From positions 12,710,001 through 12,774,000 of the forward strand of contig OZ059900.1 of NCBI GenBank assembly GCA_964057225.1: a DNA stretch of 64,000 nt, written 5' to 3'. A program made the translations under genes and the position numbers. Within the stretch, counting starts at the first letter, position 1; each line of letters opens with the position of its first letter. Below the pieces are notes generated by a model. That model saw only the letters and a list, made by a program, of their open reading frames with translations, searched no databases and was not told the DNA's origin. Of this stretch, positions 51,986-62,173 are shown one piece after another. The stretch comes from Auanema rhodensis. Taxonomy: Eukaryota; Animalia; Nematoda.

Positions 51986-54362
51986 ATGATGCAGCAGCCA
52001 TTGGAGCAATTGGATACATCTGAATCTAACGCTTCAGCATGGCTCCTAGACAAGGTGACATTTATATAAGTTGCGAACAACAAAAGATAATATAATGCAT
52101 TTTGTGAAATATAATGTACATATACATTACGGGATGATTGTAATTATGTAGCTTTATTATAATACGCCCCATGTTTCAGAAATTAGATCTGTCTCCGAAA
52201 CTCATGGCTGTGTCCCCATCGCAAAGTACCGTATATAGCACTAGCAGCCGTGCTTCTGTTAACACAAAGTATGACATTATTTTTACATAATATGATCAAG
52301 TATTTTCAAATATTATTTTTTCAAAAGTATGTGTTGCATAAAAATGAATTTTTAAACTAATATTCTAAAAAAACTAAGTTGTTTTCATAATTATTGAAAA
52401 CATTATGAGAACCCACATTATTATATAATTTTTTTTTTTGATTTTTTTTCTTCATTGGAAGAATAGTGTATTAATTGAAATTATATCCAAAACACAAAAT
52501 AGGTACATAGTAAGAAATATTACTGAAATATTTAAAATCATATTTGAAAAGAACAAAAACAACCGATTTCAATCAACATGTGAATTTAAATTTTGAAAAT
52601 ACTTATTTGAAAACTAGAACTGACATAATTCTCATAAATGATTTCAGTACATCAACATCAAAGTCAGTTAACGAATTTCCTGATATTGTTGCTCAAACTG
52701 ATTTTGATTGTTCTATTTTAATTGATGGAACGACTTGGAAAGAAGTTCTTAGTCGATGTAAAAATCAGGAAACTAAAACAAAACTTCTTGAAAATGTTAT
52801 TGAACAAGTAAGCCTACTCTTGCTATCATATTATTGGAAAAAACTTTAAAAGTTGCTTTATATTCAATATTGTTTTTGTTACTCCTTAATGAATATTATA
52901 TTATAGTTAGTTTCCTTGCGAGAACGTTTGTCATCAGATAGTTCAGCACAGTTTGAGCACGATGCTTTTCAGGATCAAATCAATTTTTCTCTTCTAAAAG
53001 AGGTTTTTTTTATCAAGAAAGCCAAATTTCTTACATACAGTATATTTTGTAGAATGATTCGAAGATTCATTTTGATTCTAATGATCCTATATACTCAAGT
53101 AATCATTTATCGTATGTGAACTATTTGGCCCAAATTAAACAATCAGGTAATTGTCTTGCTTCTTTACATTCCCATGCTTTTTTATGATATTCTTACAAAA
53201 ATGTTAAGGTTTGATAGGATATGAAAATCTGTTTAATAACAATTTCATATCAACAGCCAGTACCCTTCCTCTTCTGCAACATCTAATGATGATGACAATG
53301 CAAAATCAGTTAAAAACCGCCGCTGTTGTTGCCTCACAATCTGAAAAGCTCTCAGATCAACTTGCAAAGGTCTGTGATAAAAGATATTATTAATATAACT
53401 ATTAGTATATAGATTCCCAAATGCGAGATGGGAAAGTCACCGTGTTTACTACCAAACACACCATTGTTGGCGAATCATGATGTTTCACCCATTTTTAAAA
53501 CGATTAACCAATGTACAGAAGGTATTTTCAGAAACCCAATTGAATATTGAAATAATTCTATTCATAATGTTGTAACGTTATTCTAAATAATAGCTCATTC
53601 AGACATGATTGTTCAAGATACAATGAAGGATGAAATGGAACTTGACAGCATCAATTTGCTGCCATCTAACACGTCATCCACTTTTACTTGCCAGTCATCT
53701 ACTTCGAAGCAACCATTGAAGCAAGTAGAAAAAGCAGCAATGCATATCAAACGGCCAATGAATGCATTCATGGTCTGGGCACGGGATGAGCGGCGCCGAA
53801 TACTTAAATCGTGCCCAGACATGCATAATAGCAGTATCAGCAAAATTCTCGGTTTGTTCTATTGGGTTGAAGAAAACTGTAATTAAAATTTTTGCTCAGG
53901 ATCTCGCTGGAAGGGTATGAGCAATCAAGAAAAGCAACCGTTTTACGAAGAGCAATCAAGGCTAAGCAAACTGCACATGGAACAACATCCCGACTATCGT
54001 TATAGGTGTTTAAAACAATTAGCTTTAAAACTAACATGCACTTTAGGCCTAGACCCAAAAAAACGTGTACCATCAATGGAAAAAGAGTGCGAATCGAGGA
54101 AGTTCGATCGAAAACTAAAAAAGAAAAATTATGGCTGAAAGATCCACAATTAATTCTGCAGGGCAATACACAGGTGAATATATCTAGAAATTGTTAGATG
54201 AAGTAAAATGATTTATAAAAACAGAATTATATTCAAATTCTTTTTTAAATTTGGTATATTCTTTGAATCAATGTAACACAAGTTACTTTTCAGAGTATAA
54301 AATGTTTTAAATGTTTTCTTTAGACACTTGATCTATCATCTTTATGGGAGTCTGGTTGCTGA
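51986..54362 (+). CDS. egl-13: SoxD HMG-box transcription factor
   Basis: [79 protein letters not shown] is a SoxD-type HMG box. The exons chain in frame; further upstream exons are possible. Confidence 0.92.
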
Positions 54363-60400: not shown

Positions 60401-62173
60401 TTCATATAAATGTGAACCTAAATTAATTTCTTCGTGTTTAAGTTTTAAAAAATTATATTAACTAATTTTTGAAAACCATTAAAAATCAATGGTTTAGAAA
60501 CATTTGAATAAATATATCGAAAATGGACGTATATTGGGAGCAGCCTTAGACGTTCACGAAAGCAAGTTGTTCGAGCTCGACTCACACAACAGTATGTTTC
60601 TATATAGTTATTATTTGATCTTATTCAATTGGAAAACATGAATATCTTCAATTTTTTATTCTTCTAGATCATTTCAATATTGGTAGAAATGTCATTCAAA
60701 CTCCTCAAATGGCCTGGTATACCGAAAGTGGCGCTAAAGAATTAAGGCGGTTAGCGGTAGAAGAAGTAAGGCTTAATTCAAATTAGAAAAATTAGTACAA
60801 GGTTTCGTTAGTTTCTGAAAAAGTTATAGTGTTGAATACTAACAATTTTTTCAAATAGTAGTTTTTCAAAATATCAACTAAATGTTTTGCAGGTAATTAA
60901 ATGTTTGCTTGGTGAGCCGCTCCAATATTGTATAAACCGACAAGATATAGAGCAAGCACTTTGCCCTTCGGTTCAAAACAGCAGCTCTGCATCTTCAGCC
61001 AATAGTCATAACCTAAATTTAGAACCGACACAGACTAACCTTATCGTGGCGCAGATTTGGCAACAGATTGCGTTTAACCAGCTAACTTCTGCTGCCAATA
61101 ATATACAATCTATAATCCCATCGCAAGGACCATCTGTACCGATACCGGCAAACGCGAACACACCAGCGTTAGGGTCACAGTTTAATCCTTTATTCTCTAA
61201 CTCTTTTCTCACTATGGAACAAATCCAGCAGGCTCAAATATTATGTAAGTTAATAAAAAGATGTTCATTACCAAGTCTTATAAAAAACATCCGATTTAAA
61301 TTATTGTCAAGGACTAAAAAGCTTATTGAAAAATGAAAACTCCAACTTCTAAGCTATAATATCTCATTATATTATTTTTTCAGTATTTTCTTGGAAATTC
61401 ACTTTTGAACAGACATAATATCATGTTTATCTAACTTACTTTCTTTAATCCCTGTTATTTTTATCATCATTCCAGATGCGCAAATATTTTTGCGGGAAAA
61501 TCAACGGGTTCAGCAAGAACAATCAAAGCGACAGCGTCAACTACAACATGCTCAGAAAACTAAATACGCTCGCGAAAACAAGAAAACTTTCACGGATTCG
61601 TTGGCAATGTTGACCACAATGAACACTAGCCTCAGTAACATTAACAAATTGGATTCCGCTCAAAGCATGTTAGCATCTCTGAGGTAAAAATTAAATGAGT
61701 ACTTGTATTGAGTTTTTAACACTTTTTAAGCTCACAAATAAGTCATCCGTCATCGACACCATCACCTATTACACAGCAACTTCCAAGTCCACCTATAAAT
61801 ACCAGTCAGGTTGGCTTAAAGCACAATAATACTCTAATTTTTATTTTTATGAAACCATTCAGAAAGACTCGATAAACCTGAGTGTAGAGCAATTACAAGA
61901 TATGCAGATGGAAATAACCAGTGACTGTAACGACATTAAATCAACCGAATCATCTTCAAATTGTCTTGCACCCACAGATCTTCAATCGATTCATGATGAC
62001 TCGTCCTCAAATCAATCAATGCCAGTATTTTTCAGACAGATCCTGACTGAAACACTCAATGCAGTTGCTGCAAAGGAAAAGTATAGCTCATCTCAGTATA
62101 TCATTCATCTTTAATAAATTTCAGTTCAACTGAAGGAGAACCGTCTAACGTCACTAACTACGACTCTTCTTAG
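57488..62173 (+). CDS. ctbp-1: THAP-domain CtBP co-repressor with a degenerate dehydrogenase-like domain
   Basis: THAP MPTTCGFPNCKFRSRYRGQEDNRHFYRIPKRP...LRICSAHF joins in phase 1 to the exon at 59104. D2-HDH motifs follow (YDNIDVSAATEKGI, CDIISLHC, IINTSHG, GAALDVHE, AWYTE), then a Q/S-rich tail. Confidence 0.9.

Follow-up and report, generated by a model that had tools for sequence, protein, structure and literature searches.

When a transcription factor gene lies next to the gene of its own co-repressor, does the neighbourhood bear on the contact between the two proteins? The question is raised by a 64,000-nucleotide stretch of the nematode Auanema rhodensis genome (contig OZ059900.1, positions 12,710,001 to 12,774,000; the whole stretch is called the window here, and coordinates are counted from its first base). 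In the window egl-13, a SoxD gene, is followed by ctbp-1, a gene for a CtBP co-repressor that opens with a THAP zinc finger. The initial annotation held that these linked partners had lost or rewired their interface together, possibly toward an xLDLS docking code matched to an altered CtBP cleft. We find that EGL-13 has lost the PLNLS motif through which SoxD proteins dock on CtBP, and the dehydrogenase-like body of the neighbouring CtBP is strongly degenerate. On this evidence we put at roughly 0.5 the probability that the canonical EGL-13/CtBP contact was lost or greatly weakened on the Auanema branch, with CtBP acting mainly through its THAP domain.

A docking motif lost from EGL-13

The plus strand between 51.9 and 62.2 kb of this AT-rich window (about 30% G+C) holds two genes, egl-13 and then the THAP-CtBP gene ctbp-1, arranged head-to-tail with 3.1 kb between the egl-13 stop at 54362 and the ctbp-1 start at 57488. 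That the two are same-strand neighbours, as first annotated, is borne out by the gene models and by public RNA contigs; both are expressed and present in one copy, as the orthologues of C. elegans egl-13 and ctbp-1. In egl-13 an HMG box is split over two exons (53746-53851 and 53900-54005; Pfam HMG_box, E 1e-11 and 2e-7). Exhaustive and named searches give as the closest public protein to the first HMG exon an unnamed 428-residue product of Auanema sp. JU1783 (P0006), and as the best relatives after it nematode EGL-13 and SOX-5/6 proteins, including C. elegans EGL-13 (P0162). The A. rhodensis protein is 64% identical to JU1783 EGL-13 and 42% identical overall to that of C. elegans; its N-terminal SoxD block and C-terminal motif are collinear with named EGL-13 proteins by tblastn and alignment, and in a search of its own genome the egl-13 locus came far ahead of two other HMG loci.

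The egl-13 model was built from splice sites with the JU1783 protein as guide, and was then compared with public RNA contigs. It has 11 exons, all introns being GT-AG, and encodes 432 residues. Spliced contigs of 1592-1637 nt, from four runs of one study, cover a plus-strand transcript from 51925 to about 54638 and show 10 of the 10 introns, each with its GT..AG joint, which confirms the full coding sequence; the sole change from the first model is the acceptor of exon 6, set by RNA at 53209 in place of 53218. No further egl-13 exons were seen in the RNA contigs of the four runs, and no upstream first exon of the MSRRRKANPT type was found in the window. Exon 1 (51986-52054) carries the start codon, reads MMQQPLEQ...LLDK and is 74% identical to JU1783; exon 2 (52180-52268) opens with KLDLSPK, with 28 of 29 residues identical to JU1783; exon 3 (52648-52807, ending ...LIDG) is the conserved N-terminal SoxD block. 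These are followed by exon 4 (52907-53002), exon 5 (53053-53146), exon 6 (53209-53369), exon 7 (53413-53521), which is a fast-evolving linker holding the string TPLLAN and is 22% identical to JU1783, exon 8 (53603-53851), where the first half of the HMG box begins at about 53746, exon 9 (53900-54005) with its second half, exon 10 (54047-54173), and the coding part of exon 11 (54324-54362), which opens with TLDLS and runs to the stop. Model and RNA agree on all of these, with Pfam adding to exons 8 and 9 and alignment to exons 6 and 11.

Through PLNLS, SOX6 binds CtBP2; C. elegans EGL-13 carries the identical motif at residues 256-260 and interacts with CTBP-1 in a two-hybrid assay unless L259H is introduced (Saul et al. 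2022, PMC8816384). The premise that SoxD proteins recruit CtBP through PLNLS accordingly holds in this literature. We scanned all six frames of 44-64 kb of the window for PLNLS, P.DLS, P.NLS and P[LIVM][DN]L[STV] and obtained zero matches; transcript and scan together bear out the first description of this EGL-13 as lacking PLNLS or PXDLS. Among other nematode orthologues first surveyed (Trichuris, filariae, ascarids, tylenchs, Plectus, Pristionchus, strongylids, Mesorhabditis and Caenorhabditis) PLNL[S/T/C] is kept in all 37, at 64-111 residues before the HMG box, and in that survey only the A. rhodensis and JU1783 proteins miss it; the independent annotation of JU1783 likewise shows no motif. 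Further nematode SoxD entries keep it in 25 cases of 27. The two that do not are short models, from Haemonchus placei (P0192, 298 residues) and Pristionchus pacificus (P0209, 353 residues), and since close relatives (other trichostrongylids and other Pristionchus species) carry the motif, these absences are probably due to missed exons or isoforms. The loss of PLNLS is thus real, confirmed by RNA, and confined to this lineage. As PLNLS marks a function and does not define orthologues, its absence leaves the identity of the gene as egl-13 untouched.

The ancestral EK..PLNLSK column of the alignment falls on 53340-53369, the last 10 codons of exon 6, and JU1783 aligns EKNSSE---TL-SR at the PLNL-SK column. 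The Pro-Leu half of PLNL[S/T] has gone, leaving a stub xL[A/S][K/R] that reads DQLAK in A. rhodensis and ETLSR in JU1783. The remnant had first been placed at TPLLAN...SINLL, which is not the homologous site: TPLLAN lies about 14 residues downstream of it and SINLL about 47. Between the two Auanema, identity is 22-53% in exons 6-8, which surround the lost motif, 97% in exon 2 and 100% in the second HMG exon, a pattern that suggests that the former docking linker now evolves freely. Loss of the motif should be tolerable, since in C. elegans an egl-13 knock-in with PLNHS for PLNLS was without phenotype in the assay used, a ceh-28 reporter (PMC8816384).

Two Pro-less variants, KLDLS (52180-52194) and TLDLS (54324-54338), had been offered as the rewired contact, and both are indeed present within expressed egl-13 exons. 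Position 1 is Lys or Thr, not Pro, and fits only the rarer Pro-less class of ligands, to which ALDLS and VLDLS of EBNA3A belong. For two LDLS strings in composition-shuffled EGL-13, p is ~5.5e-4, a figure that overstates the surprise, since each string lies on an older conserved motif that comes within one or two substitutions of LDLS. TLDLSSL aligns with a pan-nematode C-terminal motif (LDFSGL, VDLSSI, VDLSAL, MDLANL) found in species that keep PLNLS, and its position reads ALELSSF in JU1783, where TLDLS is thus not conserved. KLDLSPK aligns with the conserved MDSSPNP/MDDTPNP block of other nematodes, is identical in JU1783 and matches the extended consensus xLDLSxK; KLDLS may be taken as a legitimate candidate for a replacement docking site. 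Pro-less ligands already bind the normal cleft, as for RAI2 ALDLS (PDB 8ATI) and Prospero ALSLV (bioRxiv 10.1101/2025.06.30.662346), so a new xLDLS code is not needed. With the motif pair not conserved and the alteration of the cleft itself uncertain, the case for a code matched to that cleft is weak.

The THAP domain and dehydrogenase-like body of CtBP

The neighbour, ctbp-1, has a THAP domain at 57488-57646 (Pfam THAP, E 1e-4, 23.5 bits against a cut-off of 23.9, with the C2CH residues visible) and 2-Hacid_dh and 2-Hacid_dh_C domains (Pfam) at 59.4-60.4 kb. Human and rat CtBP1/2 are the top PDB matches of 59409-59573 and 59957-60135, and one further exon also tops with CtBP1/2, at a weak E of 0.03-0.1; for 60216-60375, D-lactate and 3-phosphoglycerate dehydrogenases stand slightly above CtBP1/2. 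The 181-Mb genome has one CtBP locus. Its only other 2-Hacid_dh gene is PHGDH-like, with GLGRIG, RGG and TPH motifs intact.

The ctbp-1 transcript contig starts at 57330, and in RNA exon 1 (57488-57646), with the THAP zinc finger, is spliced to 57799, where the first bases of exon 2 (57799-57870, the remainder of the THAP C2CH, 92% identical to JU1783) match a loose RNA end. Exon 3 is predicted from splice sites at 57920-57989 (alternative donor 57993; 71% identical to JU1783). The core is predicted to start at 59104-59273 (splice sites and frame), an exon that would also hold the cleft rim, and to continue through a candidate 39-nt micro-exon AFNFQSDIDISEE at 59336-59374 (AG/GT sites, in frame), a substrate-binding exon at 59424-59574 (Pfam 2-Hacid_dh, with CtBP1/2 best in PDB) and an exon at 59709-59833 placed by open frame and splice sites. 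Further predicted exons are those at 59957-60135 with the nucleotide-binding motif (CtBP2 alignment, Pfam 2-Hacid_dh_C), 60216-60375 reading NTSHGQ (Pfam, PDB alignment), 60498-60591 reading GAALDVHES (sequence comparison, frame) and 60668-60765 reading TPQMAWY (PDB alignment). The C-terminal exons, predicted from open frame and canonical splice sites, are 60893-61244, 61476-61683, 61731-61809 and 61863-62114. When the micro-exon is included, core and tail are open through 12 canonical exons. The gene had been taken to end at 62173, as it would if the last intron were spliced instead from 62080 to 62125, but the preferred predicted end is 62114. Continuity from THAP to core is that of this predicted model, whose exons are placed up to about 58.0 kb and again from 59.1 kb.

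The residues expected of a working dehydrogenase have been substituted at several places. The NAD(H) motif GxGxxG, GFGRTG in CtBP2, reads GFNRIS in A. rhodensis and GVTKIG in JU1783. Within the catalytic triad Arg-Glu-His, Arg has become His (in NTSHGQ) and His has become Gln (in TPQMAWY), and Glu is kept in DVHES. THAP exon 1 is 98% identical to JU1783 and the first 100 residues of the protein are 90% identical; identity falls to 28-36% in the dehydrogenase exons that still match at E 1e-3, others are not detected at that threshold, and the JU1783 counterpart of the 59424 exon has no Pfam match at all. At the comparison loci, the flanking receptor genes and the egl-13 exons, identity to JU1783 is about 43-93%. 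Judged by these figures, the dehydrogenase-like body of CtBP is strongly degenerate and diverging far faster than its neighbour genes, and the THAP domain is almost invariant. C. elegans offers a precedent: CTBP-1 with the cleft mutation A203E can still rescue axon defects of SMD neurons, and THAP by itself does so in part (Sherry et al., bioRxiv 10.1101/2020.06.09.143248).

The gene listing of the JU1783 locus (L005:15186-20652, GCA_943334845.2) ends with egl-13, yet intact THAP exons and highly divergent, though still recognisable, CtBP-core exons are present there. The JU1783 core looks the more decayed of the two, with GVTKIG, NTSIDLL and no DVHES found.

The state of the PxDLS cleft is harder to read. 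DGRD34-37A and V66R abolish PxDLS binding by CtBP (PMC10760060), and other published cleft residues are C38, M42, T50, V51, A52, F53/54 and H63; the human cleft segment used for comparison was checked only against these published residue numbers. Searched by itself, the exon expected to carry the cleft matched nothing in PDB or Pfam up to E 10. Its rim, DGRD in human CtBP, is GAEQ in A. rhodensis and GEAD in JU1783. A first ctbp-1 model, with a deletion of about seven residues in the cleft-lining helix, was dropped on finding the micro-exon at 59336-59374. This segment parallels human AFCDAQSTQEIHEK (A52-F53-C-D-A-Q-S-T-Q-E-I-H63-E-K) and raises the alignment score, and JU1783 has one continuous exon of matching length at its position; it is probably an in-frame micro-exon of ctbp-1. 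In the A. rhodensis cleft M42 is changed to E and H63 to S; with the micro-exon V66 and F53 would be kept, and A52 would be K or A, depending on the placement of a five-residue insertion and on micro-exon use. JU1783 has A52 changed to T, F53 to N and V66 to Y. The cleft thus seems altered in both Auanema, and given the probable micro-exon, it may still work in A. rhodensis. The altered cleft first proposed is itself uncertain, since the micro-exon would restore the A-F...V pattern at key positions.

A derived neighbourhood

In JU1783 the THAP exon lies 3.06 kb past egl-13, and 43.3-60.9 kb of the window is collinear with this locus. The seven other nematodes compared (C. elegans, Mesorhabditis spiculigera, Necator americanus, Diploscapter pachys, Pristionchus mayeri, Brugia pahangi and Bursaphelenchus xylophilus) have neither a THAP nor a CtBP exon closer than 10 kb to egl-13. 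Found in JU1783 but in none of these seven, the egl-13/ctbp-1 adjacency is by this comparison a derived trait that arose no later than the split between A. rhodensis and JU1783. Four of the seven, from clades III and V, have a DM13 gene downstream of egl-13 on the opposite strand, which is likely the ancestral state; DM13 exons of three species had no match in the window. In C. elegans, SET-domain genes follow egl-13 within 10 kb. Among the species examined, then, adjacency and PLNLS loss both occur in A. rhodensis and JU1783 alone. Being common to both, the adjacency is not the chance of a single species, but it is a single derived event and most likely incidental.

The initial annotation saw no recognisable gene between the two, and its reading of the gap stands: there is no Rfam hit and no coding conservation with JU1783, and one conserved non-coding block of 85 bp (56051-56135, 84% identical to L005:13862-13947 of JU1783). 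The block is surrounded by otherwise unalignable gap DNA of about 3 kb, about 1.2 kb upstream of where the ctbp-1 transcript begins. It matches no Rfam family, shows no fold signal and is covered by no RNA contig, and is probably cis-regulatory. A nematode operon was considered for the pair and ruled out: the coding sequences are 3.1 kb apart (about 100-400 bp in operons), 54640-57330 is free of RNA contigs, and each gene has its own transcript.

Around the pair we note some further features. (i) Rhodopsin-type receptor genes (Pfam 7tm_1) lie 5' of egl-13, at 47262-48672 on the plus strand and at about 43.3-45.7 kb; they are collinear with two JU1783 7tm_1 genes, with exons 43-86% identical. 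(ii) The flanks of Pristionchus egl-13 match the window flanks on neither side. (iii) A charged low-complexity stretch at 51213-51363 (ERERE/KEKE-like), open in all three plus-strand frames, lies upstream of egl-13, some 600 bp from its transcript start. (iv) Past ctbp-1, an immunoglobulin-domain exon at 63690-63851 on the plus strand (Pfam Ig_3, E 3e-5), by eye like the first Ig domain of Robo/SAX-3, opens a further gene.

Possible loss, drift or relocation of the contact

We propose the following course of events. On the branch to A. rhodensis and JU1783, an intrachromosomal rearrangement would have placed egl-13 and ctbp-1 head-to-tail. On the same branch EGL-13 would have lost the Pro-Leu half of PLNL[S/T], with its linker fast-evolving from then on, and CtBP would have been stripped of its glycine motif for NAD(H), of two residues of the catalytic triad and of the DGRD rim. 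CtBP would have become mainly a THAP-tethered repressor, not one recruited through PxDLS, and selection on the docking motif of its client EGL-13 would be relaxed as a consequence.

Several points weigh against this reading. All of its traits map to one branch and make up a single observation; the decay of CtBP is known from two Auanema species, and it may have come before or after the motif loss. A word-indexed search with the NAD-site exon, under a length filter that leaves out full-length proteins, gave no CtBP of other nematodes. The loss of EGL-13/CtBP binding is inferred from sequence, and the ctbp-1 dehydrogenase exons of the window are predictions. If the micro-exon is used, Phe53 and Val66, possibly with Ala52, are kept, and the cleft may still work. 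Finally KLDLSPK, in an exon conserved at 97% and fitting xLDLSxK, may mean that binding has moved and has not been lost.

Other clients of CtBP bear on how far a loss might extend. PAG-3 and ZAG-1 are reported binding partners of C. elegans CTBP-1 (PMC3344825), and in ZEB proteins the CtBP sites lie between the homeodomain and the C-terminal fingers (PMC8304685). The ZEB zinc-finger signature KRFSHSGS, searched as a degenerate pattern in the genome, has exactly two sites, 7 kb apart on contig C4, and identifies a zag-1 orthologue at C4:8957000-8976000 on the minus strand, with both finger clusters and the homeodomain encoded. No PxDLS-like motif was found on the zag-1 coding strand of that region; a small, clean exon lying between homeodomain and C-terminal fingers encodes SPSLELTK, putatively the decayed form of a PLDLT-like CtBP site. 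The proposed check of ZAG-1 for loss of PXDLS thus shows an absence in the zag-1 region, with PSLELT as a candidate remnant. For pag-3, the degenerate zinc-finger pattern had no match in the genome. A wider version of our reading, which we regard as possible but somewhat doubtful, is that the whole CtBP/PxDLS recruitment was dismantled in the Auanema lineage: CtBP would be a THAP-tethered pseudo-dehydrogenase, and clients would have shed their motifs, EGL-13 certainly and ZAG-1 possibly (PSLELT where ZEB proteins carry PLDLS-type sites). If true, the lineage would amount to a natural knockout of this co-repressor interface, which elsewhere is conserved from worms to mammals.

One alternative, though an unlikely one, is independent drift: EGL-13 dropped a dispensable motif, the cleft serves other clients, and the divergence of CtBP is unrelated, with the adjacency a matter of chance. 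The silent C. elegans knock-in, the derived adjacency with separate transcripts, and the ambiguous state of the cleft are all consistent with this. It accounts less well for a dehydrogenase core that is degenerate in its entirety and not at the cleft alone, or for a zag-1 orthologue without PxDLS and with PSLELT in the region of the ZEB CtBP site (if the two are homologous).

Also unlikely, though a live option, is a relocation of docking out of the PLNLS linker and onto KLDLSPK near the N-terminus, perhaps helped by the C-terminal LDLS-like motif. KLDLSPK is identical in both Auanema, within an exon where 28 of 29 residues agree, and fits xLDLSxK; RAI2 and Prospero show that Pro-less motifs bind the canonical cleft, and Ala, Phe53 and Val66 may persist in A. 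rhodensis if the micro-exon is used. Set against this, species with PLNLS intact also conserve the MDSSPNP/MDDTPNP block, which may therefore be constrained for reasons other than CtBP; TLDLS, derived from LDFSGL, is ALELS in JU1783; and JU1783 CtBP has Thr52, Asn53 and Tyr66, with the DGRD rim gone in both species.

We consider it very improbable that tight linkage let matched changes in the two partners spread together. Adjacency, motif loss and CtBP decay do occur in the same two species, but as all three fall on one branch they amount to one observation, with no compensatory pair identified and xLDLS motifs that trace to older ones. What was first proposed for the linked partners is thus supported in part: the PLNLS loss is real and the CtBP core strongly degenerate, while linkage as their cause is unsupported. 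An exon or isoform carrying PLNLS that the gene model missed is hardly credible: the short H. placei and P. pacificus models without the motif (probably model errors) and the tendency of contigs to drop rare isoforms speak for such an artefact, but four runs give the same 11-exon transcript, no frame of 44-64 kb encodes the motif, and the JU1783 annotation is also without it.

The SoxD-CtBP contact via PLNLS is conserved from nematodes to mice and has been shown by two-hybrid in C. elegans. Should the preferred reading hold, with the contact lost or greatly weakened and CtBP working mainly through THAP, Auanema would be a natural comparison for the roles that require the PxDLS cleft and NAD(H) sensing, and could show how short docking motifs fare, whether by loss, relocation or replacement, as a hub protein decays. 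The neighbourhood of egl-13 and ctbp-1 is probably a curiosity.

The closest known systems are the EGL-13/CTBP-1 pair of C. elegans and the SOX6/CtBP2 pair of mouse; for the latter, PLNLS-dependent binding was reportedly described by Murakami et al. in 2001. The proteins are orthologous: EGL-13 has its N-terminal block, HMG box and C-terminal motif in common with them, and C. elegans CTBP-1 has the same architecture of THAP and dehydrogenase-like body. A. rhodensis differs from both pairs in that PLNLS has gone (DQLAK) and CtBP has neither the NAD motif nor the DGRD rim, its catalytic Arg and His being replaced; it differs from C. elegans also in having egl-13 and ctbp-1 as neighbours, which they are not in that species. 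For CTBP-1a in C. elegans SMD neurons, THAP suffices for part of the function and A203E is tolerated (bioRxiv 10.1101/2020.06.09.143248), which fits a CtBP constrained at THAP; there, however, the THAP mode is one of several in an intact protein, whereas in A. rhodensis it would be the main one remaining.

A further comparison is with the Pro-less ligands RAI2 and Prospero: KLDLS and TLDLS have the xLDLS form, and paired weak motifs are known to cooperate. These ligands bind a normal cleft, whereas that of A. rhodensis is altered or uncertain, its second motif is not conserved in JU1783, and both motifs are putative ligands. The plant protein ANGUSTIFOLIA is a relative with the CtBP fold that lacks the catalytic and nucleotide-site residues and is nonetheless the product of an open, expressed gene. 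Compared with it, the decay of Auanema CtBP is recent, lineage-specific and within animals, and the decayed body is fused to a conserved THAP domain.

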